Sequence record: NC_047995.1
Direction: 5' to 3' (one strand)
DNA length: 64,000 nucleotides
The position numbers and the translations under genes are program-made. How positions within the stretch are numbered: position 1 is the first letter of the stretch; each line of letters begins with the position of its first letter. Below the pieces are notes generated by a model. It was not told the DNA's origin, did not search any database, and saw only the letters and a list, made by a program, of their open reading frames with translations. This document shows, piece by piece, positions 1,496 through 12,251 of the stretch.

Positions 1496-2524
1496 TTATT
1501 CCTCCAATACACCACTAATCTCCGCAAACATATTTTTGTACACTAAACTACCATCGAGCATGTCCAGCCTGGCTGCCTGTACATAGAGCTTGGGTGTCGT
1601 GCGCATGTTAGCCCACGTCTTCTCGTTCGGGTCAAGGCCGCCCAACATCGGGACGATGACCATGCTAAGGTTGTGGTTAGCACGAACGAAACCAATGTCC
1701 ATGTGTTTCCTGTTTATGGTTCTGATTAGCTTGTTGATTGCGTCCAAACCAACTGGCTTATTGAATTCCGTATCATTGACAGTGTTGACCAGACTAACGA
1801 GAACTCCCTTATCTAAACCGGAGATCTCAAACAGATCCGACTTGAGATCAGCCTGAGTTGTTGCCGAGAAGTACGACACGTCATGGCCAAGATCTTTCAA
1901 GCAGGAGCCGAGAGCGCGTGCCGACTCGATGTGCGCTATGTTGTCATCACGAATAATGTACATAGGTGCATCGGGCTGGTACGTGCGTTTCGTTACCATG
2001 TCGATAAGCTCGCAAGAAGGACGGCCGACAGTGGCCAGCCCTTTGTTTGCGATGAAGAACTTATCTTTGTACTGCGCGTATATGTTCGGAGGCATATACT
2101 TCATGTAGTCATCGTCCAGGCTAAGTATCATTCGAGGCTTAGTGATCTGGACGACGAGTTGCATGGTACGCAGTGAAGCCTTGTACTCTGTATCAGAGAG
2201 CACACGGCTTATTGGTAGGTACTGCACTACAACGAACCGCTCGTCAATCGAATCGACTACAGAGCGAATCAACGTACTACCCAACGTAGGACCTGCCGAG
2301 AACTGAGTAACGATCATCACGCCGTCTTGCACGAGACTTTTCGTTGAGGCTACTGTTGCACCTCTTCCCCACTGTTGTGTAGAGGATTCCCAAGTTATGG
2401 CTGGTCGTTCGTCTCCGCTATCGGCATATACATGAGCTGTGCTACCCCAGAGACAGGCTCCAAGAAGGTAAGCAAGAGCACGTTTTCTGGATCGGCCTCG
2501 GCAGGATTGACCGTTTCGGGCCAT
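1496..2524 (-). CDS. Secreted protein with probable type I periplasmic-binding-protein fold (ABC substrate-binding/sensor-like, 342 aa)
   Basis: GAGGAG 7 nt before ATG; signal-peptide-like RKRALAYLLGACLWGSTAHVYA; alternating beta/alpha pattern with KPRMILSLDDDY resembling the KPD-x-I-x-x-x-DDNA motif. Confidence 0.55.
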   Translation of the reverse strand: MARNGQSCRGRSRKRALAYLLGACLWGSTAHVYADSGDERPAITWESSTQQWGRGATVASTKSLVQDGVMIVTQFSAGPTLGSTLIRSVVDSIDERFVVVQYLPISRVLSDTEYKASLRTMQLVVQITKPRMILSLDDDYMKYMPPNIYAQYKDKFFIANKGLATVGRPSCELIDMVTKRTYQPDAPMYIIRDDNIAHIESARALGSCLKDLGHDVSYFSATTQADLKSDLFEISGLDKGVLVSLVNTVNDTEFNKPVGLDAINKLIRTINRKHMDIGFVRANHNLSMVIVPMLGGLDPNEKTWANMRTTPKLYVQAARLDMLDGSLVYKNMFAEISGVLEE

Positions 2525-3222
2525 AGCACTTCTCCTCTCTCGTCAGTGACGTAAGGAATGCCTGCGCCTTTACCCAATCCATGACGTAAGGCCCACACTG
2601 TATCGGCATTCTCCTGCACGAACACTAACCCTTTGACTTGCGCTTCGTCTGTCGCAGTCTCTAACACCTCAACGCGCTTCTCAAGAAGCTCGGCATCAGA
2701 TTGCAGCACACGAATAGCAGACAGGTTAGAGTTAACACGCTGGTTCATGTTGTTGAACATGGTGAAGAACGAGTTGTTCATCGCCGTGCGAACGCCGTCC
2801 GTATAGGACTTAGGAATTAGTTCATCGTTGTCAAAGACGGTTACGCCTGTGCGAGCGAGAACTTTACCGGTAAGACGTCCACCACTTGCGCTAATGATTT
2901 GAGGAGCAGGTAAATCTGACTCGTCCCAAATCTGAACAGTGGTCATCACCGTATTGTAATCAGTCTCTTCCTGCCACGTATTCTTATACGGAGCAGAAGC
3001 TGCTTTCGACTTACGACGCATGACTTTCTTATAGCCAGCGTTTGCGCCATCAGCGATAATCCAGAGACCGTTTAGTGGAAATACGTGAGTAATCGGTTCA
3101 GCAAACGAAAGAATGATCGTAACGTCTGCGCCTACCTTGTACGCAATATCGTTCGACGCTGACAGACCTTGCTGTTGGGCAAGATTAATCAACGTGTCCA
3201 CGTAGTTAGTCAACTGGCTCAT
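2395..3222 (-). CDS. Putative virion/fibre-associated protein with a short coiled coil (275 aa)
   Basis: Long ORF with GGAG RBS, downstream of fibre genes; coiled coil LQSDAELLEKRVEVLE. Confidence 0.6.
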   Translation of the reverse strand: MSQLTNYVDTLINLAQQQGLSASNDIAYKVGADVTIILSFAEPITHVFPLNGLWIIADGANAGYKKVMRRKSKAASAPYKNTWQEETDYNTVMTTVQIWDESDLPAPQIISASGGRLTGKVLARTGVTVFDNDELIPKSYTDGVRTAMNNSFFTMFNNMNQRVNSNLSAIRVLQSDAELLEKRVEVLETATDEAQVKGLVFVQENADTVWALRHGLGKGAGIPYVTDERGEVLWPETVNPAEADPENVLLLTFLEPVSGVAQLMYMPIAETNDQP

Positions 3223-3684: not shown

Positions 3685-4506
3685 TTAGTCTCCTACTGCC
3701 GTGTACCAGAAGTCCCAGCCGACAGTGTTAGTGCCGCTAGACTTAATGGTAAAGCCACCTAACAAGGCGTTCTCGTTCATCGCACTGGTGCCGTCCAAGT
3801 TATACAGCGTGAAAGTCTTGGACTGGTTCGTTGCTGCGTTCACAAACGTAATGTGAAGGCTGATACAACGGTTGATGAACGGGCTATTGAAGATAACGTG
3901 CAGCGTGTCAGTTGTCGATTTGTTCACGACTCGACCCATGTTGTGGGTGAAGCCTGTGTTCATATTTCGATTGCTACCAATCCACGCGTTCGCAATAGGT
4001 GCACCAGTTACTGGGTCGAGTGCTTGCGCTGTGCGATATTCATCAATCGCTGCGTCACGCCCTGGACTACCAGTAGGGCCAGTTGCTCCAGTAGGACCGA
4101 CTGAGCCTGTGTTACCTGTAGCACCTACAGGACCTGTGTTACCAGTAGGCCCATTACGACCACGGGGGCCGCGAGGACCGGGACAGCCATCAGTGCCGTC
4201 ACGACCATCGCGTCCGTTAGTACCAGAGAGACCGCGTAAGCCGTCTTTACCCTGTTTCCCTTCACGACCAGACTTGAGCTGATCAGCAGTAGGCAAACCA
4301 ATTACGTTTGACTGACTGCCGTCTGGCCAGATGATTGAAAGTGTACCTGTATTGGTATCGAACTGAGCACCCTGAGCACCTGGAATCTTCGCGGCTTCTT
4401 GCGGGTCAATGAACGCAACAGCCGTGGACGTCTTCTTACCCAGCACTTTACCTACAGGGTCTTTACCACCGTCGATAAGTGATGGGCTAATTCTTGTAAG
4501 AGACAT
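3685..4506 (-). CDS. Collagen-like fibre protein D (273 aa, 24 Gly-X-Y triplets)
   Basis: Uninterrupted GRE..GCP..GRD triplets, preceded by FDTNTGTL..GLPT; globular C-terminal domain. Confidence 0.85.
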   Translation of the reverse strand: MSLTRISPSLIDGGKDPVGKVLGKKTSTAVAFIDPQEAAKIPGAQGAQFDTNTGTLSIIWPDGSQSNVIGLPTADQLKSGREGKQGKDGLRGLSGTNGRDGRDGTDGCPGPRGPRGRNGPTGNTGPVGATGNTGSVGPTGATGPTGSPGRDAAIDEYRTAQALDPVTGAPIANAWIGSNRNMNTGFTHNMGRVVNKSTTDTLHVIFNSPFINRCISLHITFVNAATNQSKTFTLYNLDGTSAMNENALLGGFTIKSSGTNTVGWDFWYTAVGD

Positions 4507-4729: not shown

Positions 4730-7606
4730 TTATTCGATTTCACTCGGTTCCCAACATAGAATAGGACGGCGCCACACCTGGAACACACCGATAGGGTTCG
4801 AACGGAAGTCATCAATGTAAGCATCGAAAGTACGTCCGCCACTGTTGCCGCTAGCCATGAGTGTCTGCAAGTTAGACAGCCAAGAAGCACGTCCACCAGA
4901 GTCAGCTTCAAACAATCCTTCCCACACCATGTCGAATGCGCCGCGCCACGCGTTGAAGTGATGAGAAGAATATGCACCATCACCAACTGAACACAGCACC
5001 ATGTACTGGTAGTCTTTCACGCACGGAATCATGTAGTCATTCCCACGTGGGATAGCAGTGCCGTTATTGTTGAAGATACACTCCCAACCAGTACGGTCTG
5101 CGGCGCCTGTCGTCAAGAACAGGGGACGACGAATGATCATCATAATTCCGTTCGCCCAGCCGTCATTGCTTGACTTCTCGCAATACGCATTGCAGCGTAA
5201 CGCACGGTCAACGGTAAACGTGGTAGAGTTTGAGAAGTCACGGCTGTAGAAGTTCGAACCCCACTTAGGAAGATACTCTGCTGGTGGTACGAAGAAGTGA
5301 CGTTCAGCCAATTCAACTTCACCATAAGCATCATACGCAAACACGATGTACTCGAAGCCTGCTTCAATCTGAATGTTATGACCCTGTGAGCCATAGCCAC
5401 TCCACTTCCATACAACCTGCCAATCGTTTGTATCTCGCTCAGGCATTTCCGTGATGAGCTGATATGGGCGCTCGTACACATGCCACACTTTCCCTTCTTC
5501 TGTCGTGTTGATGTACAGAGAGTTAGGGTCATTGATGTTACCGTTAGACGTACCGCAGTAGACTTTGTGTGACGCACCAGCAGAGTTATAGATAGTCCCT
5601 GAGCCTATACCTGCGAACATATCCCAGTTCATCATCAGGTGCGATGTACACATTTCGTTCTGGCCTGCACCATCAGATGTTGAGAGCAGATACTCATTCA
5701 AGTCTTTGAACGCATAGCGAACGTAGTTACTGCCTGCACGGTTAACACGGTGAACCCAGTCGTGCGATTGAACTTTCGGCACAGGGAAGCATGGGTTAGT
5801 GACAGACACGACGAAGTTTTTAGTTTCATACATCGGCAGTTTCTTGAAGCGGTTATCACGAATCGTTACCGTGTGCTTCATGCCGTAGGTCTTACCGCCG
5901 TCCATACCGCCTAACACTTTGTAGTACGACTCATGCGCACTCTTGGTGTTGTCGAACAGTCCAGTGATGCCCATAGCAAGTGTGCCGTCACGATCTGTAC
6001 CTGTGCAGTAAGGCACGTTGCCTGAATCGAAGTCGAAGCCTACAGAGTAGTAGCTGTCAGGCGAACTTGATTTAGGGCCCCAGTAGAGTTCAGTGTAGGC
6101 AGAACCTTCACCGATACCTGGCTCACCGAATACGCAGTACGCAGCACGGTAGACATACTGGCTGCCCTGGAACACACGACGTGAAGCACCGATGCGATAC
6201 ATAGCAGCAGGCAGTCCGCCCTGCACACGGTTAACGTCCGCAGTATCATACGACACAACGAAGACGTAACAGTCGGTTCCAATCGAGTTGAGGAACGCAG
6301 CACATGCGGCAGCATTGGCAACACCTGGGTTAGTACCTTCGGCAGATGCGTGAATGTCAAACGCTCGGCGCTCAAGAAGTGCAAGATCAGACTTACGAAT
6401 CTTATAGACATTTAGGCCACGAGAGTCGTTGTACTGTACACCGTTATATATCGTGTAGCCGTGATCGCCTGTGTCAAGATAGCGCTGATAGCCAACGACA
6501 TGCGAGAACAGTCTGCTACGTGCCTGCAACGCTTGGCCATTCTGATTCGACCAACTGACAGACACATCACCAGCAGCAAGACGCGCTGCCCAGTCATCAG
6601 GCTTGTAGGGGAACGTGGTCACATCGAAGTTAACACCGTACGCCGAACCAGGTTCTACGCAGCATGGATTGCGATAAATAACAGGCGGGTCAACCACAAT
6701 ATCATCAGGGATATCGACCTGTCCGCAATACATCTGCTTCCATGTACCAGGCTGGCCACCTAGCGAAGAAGGTCCTGCAGGAGCTGCACCAGTGAACTGA
6801 TAGATAGCAGACAGACGATAGTTAATCTGGTTGTGCAGCTGAGGCACGTTCGTCCACGAAATGTGATTGCCGAACGAGTTAACGGCCTTAGCGCGAGCAG
6901 CAGAGGTAGAGACAACGTATGCCTGACCGTTACTGCGAATACCTAACGGGTTGAAGATGGCGTTGAAGTTCACGTTCCCTTCATACGCGTTCTTTTGAAT
7001 CACGATAAGACTGACGCCGTTGCGATGCGCTTCACGTAAAGCCGTGAGCATCTGCGTAGGCATACTTTGGTTCGTCGCAGACAGCAGCAGCATTACGCAA
7101 CTAAACTGTTTGAAGTAGCGGTAGTCACCATTGTAGCCGTATGCACCTGCGTTAATCTCCTGCCAGCTATGTGCGAACATGTCCAGAGGCATGCGCTGCA
7201 TATAACCGACAAGCTGTCCCCACGACTCCATCGCACTATCATCATTGACAGGAGCAAGGTCGGAGATGACAAGCATCGAACTGCCGTTCGTAATGTTTGC
7301 GTTATAGCCCCGCTGAGTCAGGAAGTGACGCAACGCACCCATGTTGTTAACGCTCTTATTGCGGAAGTTCCCTAACCAGCCATAGTTAGCATCGACGAGA
7401 GGGCTACCCTCACGAACGAAACGACCATTCATGTAGATAGCGCCAAAGCCACACACGTAAGCGAGAGAGTGGCCATCTACAACAAACGAGGTGAAGCGTG
7501 ACGCATCGACTGCCATAGCATCGACAGCAGACTCGGAACCATTGCCAGGGCTACCGCTGAACACAGGAGTAATGCCTCGTGCGTACAGGCAACTTTGTTG
7601 CAGCAT
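4730..7606 (-). CDS. Large multidomain fibre/adhesin protein with an ILEI/PANDER-like domain (958 aa)
   Basis: RGLNVYKI..FDIH..AAFLNSIG..VFVVSYD..RIGAS..YRAAYCVFGEPGIGEG follows the ILEI pattern; three C-terminal repeats. Confidence 0.7.
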   Translation of the reverse strand: MLQQSCLYARGITPVFSGSPGNGSESAVDAMAVDASRFTSFVVDGHSLAYVCGFGAIYMNGRFVREGSPLVDANYGWLGNFRNKSVNNMGALRHFLTQRGYNANITNGSSMLVISDLAPVNDDSAMESWGQLVGYMQRMPLDMFAHSWQEINAGAYGYNGDYRYFKQFSCVMLLLSATNQSMPTQMLTALREAHRNGVSLIVIQKNAYEGNVNFNAIFNPLGIRSNGQAYVVSTSAARAKAVNSFGNHISWTNVPQLHNQINYRLSAIYQFTGAAPAGPSSLGGQPGTWKQMYCGQVDIPDDIVVDPPVIYRNPCCVEPGSAYGVNFDVTTFPYKPDDWAARLAAGDVSVSWSNQNGQALQARSRLFSHVVGYQRYLDTGDHGYTIYNGVQYNDSRGLNVYKIRKSDLALLERRAFDIHASAEGTNPGVANAAACAAFLNSIGTDCYVFVVSYDTADVNRVQGGLPAAMYRIGASRRVFQGSQYVYRAAYCVFGEPGIGEGSAYTELYWGPKSSSPDSYYSVGFDFDSGNVPYCTGTDRDGTLAMGITGLFDNTKSAHESYYKVLGGMDGGKTYGMKHTVTIRDNRFKKLPMYETKNFVVSVTNPCFPVPKVQSHDWVHRVNRAGSNYVRYAFKDLNEYLLSTSDGAGQNEMCTSHLMMNWDMFAGIGSGTIYNSAGASHKVYCGTSNGNINDPNSLYINTTEEGKVWHVYERPYQLITEMPERDTNDWQVVWKWSGYGSQGHNIQIEAGFEYIVFAYDAYGEVELAERHFFVPPAEYLPKWGSNFYSRDFSNSTTFTVDRALRCNAYCEKSSNDGWANGIMMIIRRPLFLTTGAADRTGWECIFNNNGTAIPRGNDYMIPCVKDYQYMVLCSVGDGAYSSHHFNAWRGAFDMVWEGLFEADSGGRASWLSNLQTLMASGNSGGRTFDAYIDDFRSNPIGVFQVWRRPILCWEPSEIE

Positions 7607-7624
7607 GTTATGTCCTTAGATCGA

Positions 7625-7646
7625 GAAGAGGGGCCGAAGCCCCTTC
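7625..7646 (-). terminator. UUCG-loop hairpin (weak terminator or stabilising hairpin)
   Basis: AGGGGC-TTCG-GCCCCT on the minus strand just after the 7648 stop; poor U-tract. Confidence 0.5.
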
Positions 7647-7647
7647 T

Positions 7648-9666
7648 TTATTCAAATACCACGTTGGTGATTGCGATGTAGTCCATGTTGATGCCGTCAC
7701 CTCTATCCCATCCAGAACTAACATACAACCAAATCTCTTCACCGATCGCTACGTTAACAGGGATGGTGAATGTTTGAATCGAAGTGTTGTTCAGTGGGTG
7801 GAAGACAGCTCCTGGATTAGAACGCTCATACCAATCAAGGCCGCTATGCCAAGAACCCTGTCTACCTGAATAGCGAATATCAACAGTGATCTGAGTGATA
7901 CGACGCGTGAAGAAGTTGTTCCACTTGAACCAACCTTTCGAGCCGCCCCAGAGTACACCGTAGTCACCATCAGGAGAACGCACTTGCGACCAGAAGTCAC
8001 CGAAGCCACGGCCACCAGTATGCTCAATCTGATAGCAGTACCAAGGGAAGCTGTCAGCAACAGGCGGCTGCGCGTTATCGCCTTCAATCGTCACACAACG
8101 ATAAGGAACGGTGAAGTCACTCACGTTGATATGTGGCGGTTGAATCGGGCAGTACACATAGTACGACCAATCACATCCGATAGGCGCCGTCACTCGCACT
8201 GTGATGTTAGAGCGCAGCACATGCTCAGGGTATTTCCAAAATTCCAGTGTGCCAGTACGACCTGCAACAACGATTGACGTATCAAGCAGGTTCATGTTCT
8301 GGTCGAACACTTCGAACTTGGTATCAAAGGAGTTCGCTACGCAAACAATAAGCTCGGCGCGAATATCCGTTTGAGTTCCTAAGGCAAAATTATCTTCTGT
8401 TGTTGGGTGACCGGCAGAGTAGACGCTATAACTCTGACAAGGGTGCATGTATTCACGCGCACCACGTTCGCCAGGGCAATACAGGCTGTAGAAGCAACTC
8501 GCCAGTGATGCAGCATTACCGAAGTCTTTACTGACTACGCGCACCATGATATCACACGCGACGTTTTGCGGGTCGAAGTAGAAGTACAGGTAACCTTCGC
8601 CCGTCTTCGCGTCCAACGTTGTCGCAATGCGTCGGCCTGACTGATACACCTCGATGAAGTCAAACGTTTCCCATGAGGTATAGTCGAGATACATCCAGCC
8701 CGCAGTCCAACCAACGAAGTGATAGTATTCGAAGGCTGAGGAGTTCTGAATGCGCTCGGTAATAGGCCAGACAGTAGCGTGACACGGTGCAGGGAAGATT
8801 GGGCTACCGATGTAATCAGGATGAATAACGTCAGGGAAGTTGATAACGTCATATGCAGCCTGGCTGTCGAGAGCCAACCCACCACGGTCAGACGGTGCAG
8901 CAAGACGAGGCGGATAGACTTCTAAGCTCCAGCCGTAACCCTGTGTTGTACGCACACGTACCATGATACGCATGTCAGCAGCGTCAGGGTCGAACTGGAA
9001 TTTGATACGTGACCGACCAACTACTTTACCGCACGTCGAAGCAACACGCACACCCATGTGATACACGTCAACGCTCGCACCAGCAGGAGCATACGACGCA
9101 ATCATCAGCTCAACGTAGCCCTCAATAGCAGGCATTGCATAGATTGTTTCTGTGACTGTAGCACCGCGGCCATGTACTGAGGCATACGGAACGTTAGGGT
9201 TAGCGTATGTGCCAAGCCCTGAACGCGAGGCCACGCCGACAGGGTCGTAGGTCTCAATAGTTTTAATACCAGGGCGATTGATAGATCTGCCAGTAGGTGG
9301 AGCAAATGAGTTAATAAGGCCGAACCCAGTGCGCCCAGCATCAGGCAAATCAAACCCAGCAGGATAGCCTTTAAGAATATCATATTTCTCTCTGCCACCG
9401 GAGCCGATACCGTTGCCAGAGCCTTTGGTTGTCGATGTAGGACCGCCACCACACGCACCTGTTTCGAGGTTCGAACAAGGGTCATCGTAAGTGGGATCGA
9501 ACGAGTCATCAATTAGATGCCAGCGCTGACCCCACTGATTACGAACGCTGAACTTCTCAGGAGTAAGAGGAGTCCAGTCACCTTCTTGTGTGCGTATGAA
9601 CATAGGCGTGTCAACACAATCGTGCCAACCGTTATTCGCAGCATTACGAACGCGAAAACGTGCCAC
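7648..9666 (-). CDS. Virion fibre-associated protein with three tandem beta-sandwich repeats (672 aa)
   Basis: Three repeats of about 90-110 aa containing VDVY/IEVY/FEVF and ending MVRV/MVRV/TVRV; in the fibre cluster. Confidence 0.65.
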   Translation of the reverse strand: MARFRVRNAANNGWHDCVDTPMFIRTQEGDWTPLTPEKFSVRNQWGQRWHLIDDSFDPTYDDPCSNLETGACGGGPTSTTKGSGNGIGSGGREKYDILKGYPAGFDLPDAGRTGFGLINSFAPPTGRSINRPGIKTIETYDPVGVASRSGLGTYANPNVPYASVHGRGATVTETIYAMPAIEGYVELMIASYAPAGASVDVYHMGVRVASTCGKVVGRSRIKFQFDPDAADMRIMVRVRTTQGYGWSLEVYPPRLAAPSDRGGLALDSQAAYDVINFPDVIHPDYIGSPIFPAPCHATVWPITERIQNSSAFEYYHFVGWTAGWMYLDYTSWETFDFIEVYQSGRRIATTLDAKTGEGYLYFYFDPQNVACDIMVRVVSKDFGNAASLASCFYSLYCPGERGAREYMHPCQSYSVYSAGHPTTEDNFALGTQTDIRAELIVCVANSFDTKFEVFDQNMNLLDTSIVVAGRTGTLEFWKYPEHVLRSNITVRVTAPIGCDWSYYVYCPIQPPHINVSDFTVPYRCVTIEGDNAQPPVADSFPWYCYQIEHTGGRGFGDFWSQVRSPDGDYGVLWGGSKGWFKWNNFFTRRITQITVDIRYSGRQGSWHSGLDWYERSNPGAVFHPLNNTSIQTFTIPVNVAIGEEIWLYVSSGWDRGDGINMDYIAITNVVFE

Positions 9667-9675
9667 ATGTTCTCC

Positions 9676-10167
9676 TTATGGGCGAACCCAGATAGCACCA
9701 GCAGCAATTTCCTGATCGATAGCAGGATCGGTGTCTTGTACAAACACCATCACTGTACCGGGATTGCCGGGAGCACCAGTAGGACCAATAGGACCCGTCG
9801 GGCCCGCAGGACCGCGATTACCCACGTAGCCTTGCTTACCCTGATTGCCGTCAGTACCACGAGGACCCGGGCAACCATCAGTACCACGACGACCATCACC
9901 GCCCATCAGACCATCAAGACCATCACGACCTGAAGGACCTACGCCACCAGCAGGACCGTAGCCGATACTGTGAATCGTAGGCAGCCCTGAGATCTGGAGT
10001 TTACCGAAGGTGGGAATGTTGATAGCAAGCACACCAGTCTGCTGGTCGAATGAACCGTTAAGAGTGCTGTCATCTTCTGTCGTATCGACGACTAAGCCGC
10101 CTTGGGTAGCTAGTACAGGACCAGATGCGTTGGTCTTGACTAGCGCAATATCAACTTTTTCTACCAT
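9676..10167 (-). CDS. Collagen-like fibre protein C (163 aa, about 22 Gly-X-Y triplets)
   Basis: Gly-X-Y run; FDQQTGVL..GLPT motif; C-terminal GAIWVRP. Confidence 0.85.
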   Translation of the reverse strand: MVEKVDIALVKTNASGPVLATQGGLVVDTTEDDSTLNGSFDQQTGVLAINIPTFGKLQISGLPTIHSIGYGPAGGVGPSGRDGLDGLMGGDGRRGTDGCPGPRGTDGNQGKQGYVGNRGPAGPTGPIGPTGAPGNPGTVMVFVQDTDPAIDQEIAAGAIWVRP

Positions 10168-10176
10168 GATTACTCC

Positions 10177-10809
10177 TTACGGCCAGGTAGTGCCTTGATC
10201 TTTAGTAGGGTCAACCCAGATTGTACCAGCAGCAACAGCGCCAGGCTGAGTAGCACTAACGATGATAGACAGACGACCAGCAGGACCAGCAGCACCTGTT
10301 GCACCAGTAGGGCCTGTAGCTCCAGTCTTGCCTGTAGGGCCTGTGCCGCCACGAGGTCCAGTAGGGCCCGTAGGTCCCATAGGTCCAGTACGACCGTCAG
10401 GTCCAGTAGGTCCGACAGGGCCGGGTAGACCATCACGACCATCAGGTCCTGGGATACCTTGCTCACCATCGGGCCCTACGTTACCGTCACACCCAGGTTC
10501 ACCCGGATTCCCATCGCGACCATCACGTCCGTCTTTACCATCAGCGCCCGTCTCACCTCTGCCCCCTTGACGGCCTTCAGGGATATCAGAAGCAGTAGGG
10601 AAGCCATTCACTTTGACAGTCTGACCGTTAGCGAACTTGAGCGTCAAGATACCGCTAGTGGCATCGAACGAGGAGTCGCCTGTCAGCTCGGAAGGTACAT
10701 CAGCATCAGCAGGACTGACTGTAAGAGTTCCCTTAGAAGCACGAACAGCGGTCGGCGTAGAGGACGAGCCTGCTTGAATGAGGCCGGTACTTACTTTAAT
10801 CAGACTCAT
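10177..10809 (-). CDS. Collagen-like fibre protein B (210 aa, about 34 Gly-X-Y triplets)
   Basis: Gly-X-Y run; [12 protein letters not shown] motif; C-terminal GTIWVDP. Confidence 0.85.
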
Positions 10810-12251
10810 TACTTTTTCTCCGCTTTTGCAACGATATCCGTGTTATGCACAAGCACATCTCCGACGAAGTAGCAGTCGAATGGGTCAACGTCAATATCGA
10901 CCGTCTGCACATTATCGTCAACGCGGCGCATCTCGTAGACAGAGACAGGACCGTTGCGGCCTAGAACAGTTTGACCAGCTTGTACATCACGCGCAGGAAC
11001 ATAGCGCCACGCAGTATCGTCGTAAATCAAAACAGGGTGTTCGTGCGTGAACTTCTGTCCGTTGATAACATAGAAGTGGTCCTCTTGACCGCGAACCAAC
11101 GCTTTAACAGTTGCGTACACAGTTGTGCCTTTGAGGCTAGGCGAAGACCAACGTCTGAACTCTTTAGGCTGATTCGAATAGCCAAGAATAGCATCGCCAA
11201 CGCGAAGTTCTTCTACAGTCTTCGGACCAACGAGAGTCTCAACAACGGAACCAAACACGATACAGCCAGATGTTGCAGTGTTGACAGGGTTACGCGCAAC
11301 GACAGTCAACGCAGAACGCGCTGTAGCTGTAGGACGCGATGTTTGTCCCATGTCAGTTACGACGCAGGTGATGGTGCCTTTGATAATACGATCAGCACCA
11401 AGACCAAGCCGCAGGTAGAAGTTAACAATGCAGGTGTTTGTCTCTGTAGCTTCGAGAGTTACACCTTCTGTGGTAGTGACTGTCCATTTATACTTATATG
11501 GACCGACACCGCCACGCGCATTGACAGGTAGATATGCCAGTGACGTAAACACATCAGAGCCTTGCACTGTACGTTGACCTACCAGGTACAGACTCGACAC
11601 TGACGCAGCAAGAGGTGATATTGTAGGAAGCGGTGGTGCTGGCGTAACGTTCGTCGTAGGGTATAACCACACGAACACTTTACTATCCAGAGGTTGAACA
11701 GACGATAGCACTGCTGTAGTGATTGGCGCTGGGCCGGTTGCACCCGTAGCACCTGCGATACAGCTTGGACCGTCATTGCCCCGCGGGCCGATTGGACCTG
11801 TAGGGCCTGTATTACCGTCAGGGCCTGTAGGACCATCGGGTCCCATACGACCCGTATCGCCGTCAGGACCATCTTCGCCGTCTCGGCCAGGGTCTCCGAC
11901 AGGACCTGTCTTACCTCTGTTACCCACACCGCCAGGACAACCAACGCGACCAGTTTCTCCATCACGACCGTTTCGCCCGTCACGACCAGGAGAGCCTGGA
12001 GCGCCTCGACGCCCAGACTTACCTTCACCGAACATGGAAACAGTCGGAAGCCCAGGGACGTTTAGCACCTCCCCGTTCTTCTTGATGAAAACCAATACAC
12101 CTGTCTTGCTGTTAAATCTTACGCTGGCGAGCTGTGTCAGTGTTGCCACATCAGAGGCTTCGAATTTAACACCTCCGTCAACTCCGACTAAGGATTTACC
12201 TTCATCGTTCTGCGTTGTTTCGACTTGCGAAAGTTTTAACAGTGTTGTCAT
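10809..12251 (-). CDS. Collagen-like fibre protein A with a C-terminal Hint (intein-like) domain (480 aa)
   Basis: 29 Gly-X-Y triplets, an interruption, then 3 more; a beta-rich domain; then a Hint domain. Confidence 0.85.
10842..11264 (-). other. Hint autoprocessing domain (141 aa, no endonuclease)
   Basis: Block A CIVFGSVV (Cys1), block B THEHP (TxxH), block [14 protein letters not shown], terminal VHN followed by Thr+1. Confidence 0.85.

Follow-up and report, generated by a model that had tools for sequence, protein, structure and literature searches.

The stretch of DNA analysed here (the window, 64,000 nucleotides) corresponds to positions 62001-126000 of sequence record NC_047995.1, Erwinia phage vB_EamM_Alexandra. 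The phage (266.5 kb, genus Alexandravirus) is a jumbo myovirus whose host is Erwinia amylovora. Our subject is the product of gene gp112 (HOT49_gp112), a fibre protein that matches PHROG 38766 (E 5e-257) and that ends in a Hint domain followed by a short tail (Table 1). The protein begins with a domain that it has in common with the paralogues gp111, gp110 and gp106, in which Phe46, Gly51 and the motif Gly67-x-Pro69-Thr70 are invariant. This domain is probably the end by which the fibre is attached to the virion. The collagen-like stalk that follows contains 29 unbroken Gly-X-Y triplets, one interruption and 3 further triplets (run lengths counted on homologues), with every third Gly invariant in 23 homologues and Cys105 invariant across the paralogues. 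Such a stalk would form a collagen triple helix of about 25 nm. Behind a proline-rich linker an AlphaFold model (a monomer, built from 23 sequences) reveals an immunoglobulin (Ig)-like beta-sandwich at about residues 210-322, with block-mean values of the predicted local distance difference test (pLDDT) of 77-93 and a weak match to the SprB repeat in the Pfam search. In the mature fibre the Ig-like domain probably serves as the functional distal domain. A linker that differs in length and composition among the orthologues, and that is modelled with pLDDT <50 over residues 324-328, then leads into the Hint domain. The first-pass annotation of this DNA had placed a Hint domain at the tip of a collagen fibre. 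The domain is indeed terminal on a collagen-stalked protein, but the Ig-like sandwich and the 7-residue linker lie between the stalk and the Hint.

Table 1. Position of gp112, its parts and related genes. Coordinates refer to the window, except in the last row.
Feature	Position	Strand	Remarks
gp112 (HOT49_gp112)	10809..12251	-	480 amino acids and stop; whole Hint-carrying fibre protein; open reading frame (ORF) list and RefSeq annotation 'virion structural protein'
gp112 N-terminal domain, residues 1-76	12024..12251	-	common to gp111, gp110 and gp106 (alignment)
gp112 collagen-like stalk, residues 77-175	11727..12023	-	Pfam Collagen 1.5e-13
gp112 proline-rich linker and Ig-like beta-sandwich, residues 176-322	11286..11726	-	AlphaFold, all-beta
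gp112 variable linker, residues 323-329	11265..11285	-	ends in invariant Gly329, at -1 of the predicted N-terminal cleavage site
gp112 Hint domain, residues 330-470 (141 amino acids)	10842..11264	-	Pfam, PDB match, AlphaFold/Foldseek, family profile
Codon of Cys330	11262-11264	-	catalytic
Codon of Thr402	11046-11048	-	catalytic
Codon of His405	11037-11039	-	catalytic
Codon of Asp452	10896-10898	-	catalytic
Codon of His469	10845-10847	-	catalytic; His469-Asn470 together 10842-10847
Codon of Asn470	10842-10844	-	catalytic
gp112 C-terminal tail (C-extein), residues 471-480	10812..10841	-	Thr471 codon 10839-10841; stop codon 10809-10811
gp111 Shine-Dalgarno sequence GGAG	10818..10821	-	inside the Ala477-Glu478 codons of gp112
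gp111	10177..10809	-	210 amino acids; collagen-like paralogue without Hint; translationally coupled neighbour of gp112
gp110	9676..10167	-	163 amino acids; collagen-like fibre paralogue without Hint
gp106	3685-4506	-	collagen-like fibre paralogue of gp112
HOU32_gp096, gp112 orthologue of phage JA11	3479-4453, locus L003 (NC_048077.1)		324 amino acids; syntenic, same flanking genes

Sequence and structure comparisons confirm that gp112 contains a Hint domain with its catalytic residues in place. In the Pfam search the protein matched PT-HINT (PF07591; 1.4e-5, 25.8 bits against a gathering threshold of 27.7) and Hint_2 (1.7e-5), both slightly under the curated gathering cut-offs, and a sequence search of the PDB aligned the Hint over the whole domain length with a solved bacterial intein-like (BIL) domain, 2lwy (E 3.8e-5). 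Residues 330-470 are modelled with block-mean pLDDT of about 82-93, the tail with 41. Foldseek matched the model with a probability of 1.00 to BIL2 of Tetrahymena, to the mini-intein gp41-1 and to RadA inteins, with target-normalised template modelling (TM) scores of 0.72-0.76; the best structural match was BIL2 (E 3.5e-7, TM 0.76), at 17% sequence identity. A family profile built from 66 relatives and the query itself scored the gp112 Hint at E 4.9e-48, a value that is partly self-matching, and found no second Hint in the window or in the neighbouring fibre genes. The catalytic residues listed in the first-pass annotation were all recovered, namely Cys330 as Cys1, Thr402-His-Glu-His405 as the TxxH motif, Asp452 of block F, the terminal His469-Asn470 and Thr471 at position +1. 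The 141-residue domain aligns contiguously and without an insert to a 138-residue BIL domain, which leaves no space for a homing endonuclease, and exactly 10 residues follow Asn470 before the stop codon, both as had been read before.

Searching 5.8 billion proteins, we found 22 homologues of gp112 (476-490 residues, 45-91% identity), all of which have the same four-part architecture. Gly329, Cys330, Thr402, His405, Asp452, His469 and Asn470 are invariant in 23 of 23 proteins, gp112 included. With tblastn the Hint was found in 55 of 50,697 phage records. These comprise every member of the genera Alexandravirus, Sasquatchvirus (Y3), Snuvirus, Yoloswagvirus and Rivsvirus in the collection, the Yersinia phage fHe-Yen9-02 and, as more distant carriers, Alcaligenes phage Afa-NA1, Salmonella phage Sen-NF, phage NCTB and an uncultured 484-kb phage. 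Across the 23 proteins the pairwise identities of the Hint follow those of the non-collagen N-extein (Spearman 0.91). The pooled Nei-Gojobori ratio of nonsynonymous to synonymous substitutions (dN/dS) over ten genomes is about 0.11 for the Hint, the lowest of five regions, and 0.16-0.20 for the anchor, collagen and Ig regions, all of them rough values with synonymous sites near saturation. At +1 most close relatives have Thr, while the homologue P0023 has Ser, P0019, P0024 and NCTB have Ala, fHe-Yen9-02 has Val, and P0025 and Afa-NA1 have Met; hence Thr+1 does not hold up as a conserved feature. Since this position varies among the orthologues, class-1 splicing is not the function that selection maintains. 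The data support a resident (domesticated) gp112 Hint that is inherited vertically and is under strong purifying selection. The first-pass annotation had proposed a domesticated autoprocessing module rather than a selfish element, and the presence of the Hint in 22 of 22 homologues, the correlated identities, the low dN/dS and the invariant catalytic set argue for this proposal.

When the Ig-like domain was used as query, four further phages were found at 42-43% identity, Dickeya phages JA11, JA13, JA29 and JA33 (Salmondvirus). None of the four gave a Hint match in tblastn, and among the phages compared this four-member genus is the only one lacking the domain. The orthologue from JA11 (Table 1) has the anchor, collagen and Ig domains, ends in '...ARNPK' 7 residues short of the position of Gly329 and has no counterpart of the tail. 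Because this Hint-less form exists in a related phage of the same morphology, a fibre that consists of the N-extein only is viable, and this is our strongest, albeit indirect, argument that the mature Alexandra protein would be the N-extein, with or without the tail. Since the more distant orthologues of Afa-NA1 and NCTB retain the Hint, a loss in Salmondvirus is the more parsimonious history. In the first-pass annotation sporadic presence across homologues was taken as the mark of an ordinary mini-intein. Orthologues without Hint do exist, but their pattern looks like that of a terminal module lost or gained by a whole lineage and not like that of a sporadic, intein-style insertion.

An ordinary selfish mini-intein that had entered the gene close to its 3' end and is spliced out by class-1 chemistry via Thr471 would account for the presence of Cys1, the block B Thr and His, the block F Asp, His-Asn and Thr+1 in Alexandra, and it would be in keeping with a Salmondvirus orthologue that lacks the domain and with a free-standing HNH endonuclease gene about 7.6 kb away. 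We regard this explanation as very unlikely. Other orthologues have Ala, Val, Met or Ser at +1, and the Hint-less orthologue has no tail counterpart, so that there is no intein-free allele with joined exteins. The insertion site is a variable linker and not a conserved motif, and the purifying selection acts over the whole, vertically inherited domain. The selfish class-1 intein was rejected on the Spearman coefficient, the dN/dS of the Hint and the variable +1 residue.

The gp112 Hint is one of many that stand at the end of a protein. In an exhaustive HMMER scan of the Hint alone against 1.84 billion representative proteins we obtained 432 matches at E <= 1e-3, and the family counts given here rest on the best 150 of these 432 (149 other proteins). 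In 96 of the 149 the His-Asn pair lies at most 15 residues from the C-terminus (tails of 1-15 residues, most of them 4-10), and this shared terminal position is a further point against a selfish mini-intein. The N-terminal parts of the terminal-Hint proteins are diverse and include collagen (11/86), Ig, PKD, PASTA, phage tail-collar and several 'tail protein' PHROGs. Structural matches in BFVD include proteins of uncultured phages that end in a Hint and are annotated as FN3, PASTA or tip-attachment-protein-J, and some members of the family are encoded on metagenomic contigs of 224-311 kb, the size of jumbo phages. Across 86 family members with a mean column identity of 6%, Thr402, His469 and Asn470 never change, and the conservation of Cys330 and His405 is 90% or higher; 54 of the 86 match PF07591. 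Catalytic residues are expected to be kept at so low an identity only if catalysis is in use. The -1 residue of the terminal-Hint proteins is Gly in 26 of 41 cases and the -2 residue in 20 of 41. Since the linker before Cys1 varies in length and these two positions are often Gly, the cleavage site is likely exposed. At +1 the family (n=96) has Ala (20), Lys (20), Ser (11), Val (9), Leu (9) and Thr (2).

The conservation could also be read in a different way, with the Hint staying on the fibre as a distal, possibly receptor-binding, domain, whose thioester either never forms or couples the fibre to a virion protein or to a molecule of the host surface. The distal position is where receptor-binding domains sit, the sequence is as conserved as that of structural domains, and coupling has precedents in Hedgehog and BUBL (PMC8616854). 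Nevertheless, we consider a retained Hint improbable. The invariance is centred on the catalytic residues even at 6% mean column identity, and an orthologue without Hint occupies the same gene position in a virion of the same type (PMC6143709). Furthermore, the same type of Hint ends unrelated N-terminal parts (collagen, Ig, PKD, PASTA, tail-protein), which suits a processing module but not a receptor binder, and coupling alone leaves the invariance of His-Asn unexplained.

Several observations concern the wider family. Phage NCTB has three Hint genes in the equivalent fibre module (locus L006, LT598654.1; 420-4334, 5698-6159 and 6159-7679). Its gp112 orthologue has the tail AVMVAKK, a protein of 1304 residues also ends in a Hint, with the tail APVDQKH, and a stand-alone Hint of 153 residues lacks Cys1 and a clear block B His and is likely inactive. 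Tandem Hints occur in the metagenomic proteins P0051, P0052, P0091, P0108, P0115 and P0131, where they are joined by linkers of Lys or Lys plus Gly; the next Cys1 comes a few residues after His-Asn-Lys at most, a layout reminiscent of the alternating BUBL loci. The records of Afa-NA1 (PV550095.1, 78 kb) and Sen-NF (PV359490.1, 108 kb) state different hosts but give near-identical tblastn scores with the Ig and Hint queries. Both carry a fibre module of jumbo-phage type; the two may have a segment in common, or the assemblies may be incomplete or mixed. A 'large intein domain protein' of Afa-NA1 (7619-8845) resembles by eye the N-terminus of Alexandra gp109, without obvious Hint motifs, and its name looks as if it had been carried over from NCTB.

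The short tails (<=15 residues) are rich in lysine. Lys is present in 93 of the 96 and makes up 15% of the tail residues, compared to 3.7% when these proteins are counted over their full length. It is the second-to-last residue in 36 of the 89 tails that are long enough, the last residue in 22 of 96, and it falls within the last four residues in 73 of 96. In contrast, Lys is found in the last four residues of only 8 of 48 C-termini of family members with an internal Hint (Fisher p = 8e-12) and of 11 of 49 ORFs of the window (Fisher p = 6e-10). Arg occurs in the last four residues of 5 of 96 tails and is thus depleted compared to the internal-Hint C-termini (15%) and the window ORFs (35%). Of 59 sequence clusters (45% identity), 46 show the lysine signal. 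Tails of a single residue are Lys in six of seven cases, and the commonest +1 residue in the clade is Lys as well (46/144). Lys476, Lys479 and Lys480 of the Alexandra tail agree with this pattern. A generic bias of C-termini or of ribosome-binding sites behind the lysine was rejected, because the controls have 17-22% against 76% in the tails and Arg is depleted. Tails with Ser or Thr at +1 carry Lys too, and a comparison that treats Lys as a substitute for Ser or Thr at this position does not discriminate. The Hint-less JA11 orthologue also ends in Lys, a single case that resembles the C-terminal lysine habit of the family.

Among close relatives of Alexandra the tail overlaps with a second signal. 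The Shine-Dalgarno sequence of gp111 lies inside the codons for Ala477 and Glu478, and the ATG of gp111 (10807-10809) overlaps the stop codon of gp112 (TAATG). Nine of ten genomes have the same nine bases for Ala477-Glu478-Lys479 and the tenth has one synonymous change; the proportion of synonymous differences (pS) across the ten genomes is 0.41 in the tail compared to 0.62-0.72 elsewhere. We have therefore discarded the invariant Glu478-Lys479 as evidence at the protein level, since these bases hardly change even synonymously and constitute the ribosome-binding site of gp111 with its spacer. Because of this confounding site, conservation of the tail among close relatives does not count as protein-level evidence. 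The family-wide preference for Lys and not Arg, seen against matched controls, does count as such evidence.

The lysine tails raise the possibility of a lysine-directed acyl transfer in cis, in which the epsilon-amine of a tail lysine would take over the Gly329 thioester and, after cyclisation of Asn470, leave a branched, isopeptide-linked tail. The C-terminal Gly of the fibre would thus pass from the Cys1 thioester to the tail lysine, or to a tail that consists of a single Lys, and the Hint would leave by Asn cyclisation. A precedent exists in BIL2 of Tetrahymena thermophila BUBL1, where a lysine of the C-terminal flank acts as nucleophile and its epsilon-amine is joined by an isopeptide bond to the C-terminus of the N-extein (PMC8616854), and BIL2 (PDB 6y75/6tmm) is the top structural match of the gp112 Hint. 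The enrichment of Lys (93/96 tails; 73/96 within the last four residues), the depletion of Arg, the 46 of 59 clusters, the one-residue tails and the frequent Lys at +1 all fit such a reaction. However, we consider it rather unlikely. The lysine keeps its place relative to the C-terminus (position -2 in 36/89) and not a fixed distance from the Asn, which does not readily suit an active-site nucleophile, and Lys479 of the Alexandra clade sits in the spacer of the gp111 ribosome-binding site. The tail itself is modelled with a pLDDT of 41. BIL2 shares 17% identity with gp112, is eukaryotic and is flanked by ubiquitin-like domains; the likeness is one of the general Hint fold, and its TM score of 0.76 is equalled by that of an ordinary mini-intein, gp41-1 (0.76). 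It is likewise doubtful that terminal Hints with short lysine tails form a widespread, mostly phage-borne class dedicated to ATP-independent isopeptide chemistry, with a branched or capped fibre tip as the product.

Instead, we favor self-removal in a more general form. We infer that the gp112 Hint is a transient, resident C-terminal module that removes itself, either by cleavage or by a BIL-type ligation of the tail, and we assign this reading a probability of roughly 60%. A resident Hint of the type A BIL kind would act once and in cis. Cys330 would attack the carbonyl of Gly329 in an N-S acyl shift, giving a thioester at the end of the flexible linker, and Asn470, aided by His469, would cyclise and cut the bond to the 10-residue tail. 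Both steps are likely to occur because the catalytic set is invariant. Resolution of the thioester by water would leave a fibre of 329 residues, similar to the JA11 protein, while resolution by an amine or hydroxyl of the tail (the Thr471 side chain, the freed alpha-amine or a tail lysine) would give a fibre of 339 residues. On either route the mature fibre would be without Hint, as is the Salmondvirus orthologue. Retention of His-Asn before a tail of only 1-15 residues suggests that it matters to separate the tail from the Hint, and this in turn suggests that the tail, or its first residue, ends up on the fibre. It could arrive there through attack by Thr471 where this residue is present, through BIL-type aminolysis by the freed alpha-amine, or through a lysine epsilon-amine. 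Both the invariant His-Asn and the lysine tail seen throughout the family speak for a resolution within the molecule and not for an outside acceptor. Simple hydrolysis is equally compatible with the data. The first-pass annotation had offered splicing, release and covalent coupling, and the present data do not choose among the three.

Some points weigh against self-removal of the Hint. The Pfam matches fall just short of the curated cut-offs, and the AlphaFold model, being monomeric, is uninformative on the trimer. An invariant His-Asn before a tail of 1-15 residues is unnecessary for a simple N-terminal release, and hence plain hydrolysis may be an incomplete account. No virion proteome of the Alexandra clade was found in a full-text literature search. 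Finally, a transient cap, a folding aid or chaperone, or a timing device for the trimeric fibre are candidate purposes, but all of them are purely inferred.

Judged by the features that could be tested, the closest known kind appears to be the type A BIL domain, reportedly described by Amitai in 2003 and Dassa in 2004. Like these domains, the gp112 Hint combines the Hint fold with an N-terminal Cys and a C-terminal His-Asn (23/23 and 86/86), has no conserved +1 nucleophile and no homing endonuclease, lies outside conserved enzyme motifs and is inherited vertically. Type A BILs reside in variable surface or secreted proteins, a setting comparable to that of gp112. The comparison at sequence level was made with one solved BIL sequence, 2lwy (E 3.8e-5). 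In type A BILs cleavage at either end dominates, and minor splicing occurs by aminolysis, with the freed amino group attacking the thioester (PMC4031507). In contrast to the described BILs, which have sizeable flanks and are part of bacterial proteins, the gp112 Hint is found at the extreme C-terminus of a virion fibre and is followed by 10 residues. A family-wide terminal lysine of BIL-like Hints was not found described in the literature searched.

In architecture gp112 comes closest to the Hedgehog/Hog proteins, where a functional N-terminal part precedes a C-terminal Hint. The Hedgehog Hint cleaves a Gly-Cys bond via a thioester and is discarded, and a nucleophile other than water can resolve the thioester. 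Known Hedgehog Hint domains lack a terminal His-Asn and have a sterol-recognition extension, whereas His-Asn is invariant in gp112 and an adduct-recognition extension is missing. No match of gp112 to the Pfam Hint (Hedgehog) model was obtained. The best Pfam match is to PT-HINT of polymorphic toxin systems, at a score below the gathering threshold. PT-HINT stands ahead of a C-terminal toxin domain, which it presumably sets free, while in gp112 only the 10-residue tail follows and there is no cargo. The chaperone domains of the Peptidase S74 type offer a functional analogy only, as C-terminal modules of trimeric phage fibres that cleave themselves off after assembly; their fold and chemistry (a serine-lysine dyad) are unrelated, and they have no sequence or structural match to gp112. 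From a canonical class 1 intein the gp112 Hint differs by the absence of a conserved Cys, Ser or Thr at +1, of insertion into a conserved motif, of alleles with joined exteins and of an endonuclease or other mobility.

The genes around gp112 are those of a fibre module. The products of gp106, gp110, gp111 and gp112 share the N-terminal domain and the invariant collagen Cys (Cys105 in gp112), and only their C-terminal ends differ. The order gp112-gp111-gp110 is preserved in Y3, Yoloswag, AD1, JA11, fHe-Yen9-02, Afa-NA1 and NCTB. AD1 and Y3, relatives of Alexandra, have been described as 'hairy Myoviridae' with whisker-like tail fibres, and the proteins behind these fibres are still unassigned (PMC6143709). 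The four gene products are candidates for the hairs. Directly downstream of the fibre genes gp105 and gp106 lies the free-standing HNH endonuclease gene gp104 (2395-3222, minus strand), which is not part of the Hint domain. The 958-residue product of gp108 (4730-7606, minus strand) contains a domain of the ILEI (interleukin-like EMT inducer) type, with a Pfam match of 6.5e-6 that lies at the gathering score. Such a domain is unusual in a protein of a phage tail module, and the JA11 counterpart of gp108 is annotated alike.

An 'intein domain' in proteins of the gp112 type has already been noticed by the annotators of Y3, whose record notes a 'putative phage tail protein, contains intein domain', and of NCTB, whose product names read likewise. 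A full-text literature search turned up no paper that deals with a phage fibre carrying a Hint or intein-like domain. New here are the case for domestication, an orthologue that naturally has no Hint, the size of the terminal-Hint family with its bias towards phage fibres, and the lysine tail.

Hint domains are known as selfish inteins, as processing modules of Hedgehog proteins and as the poorly understood BIL domains of bacteria. The Alexandra clade places a catalytically intact Hint that is under selection at the end of a virion fibre, and this is not a one-off, as the end-of-protein layout and the lysine-bearing tail recur in the family (96/149). If gp112 is left unprocessed, the finding shrinks to an unusual distal domain. 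If it is processed, this would be a new maturation step for the fibres of the 'hairy' jumbo phages (PMC6143709) and a natural example of what a BIL domain is for, and possibly a second instance of lysine-directed protein ligation. Should the lysine of the tail indeed be the acceptor, a virus of prokaryotes would possess a counterpart to the BUBL reaction of Tetrahymena, and virion proteins would carry a new kind of post-translational modification.

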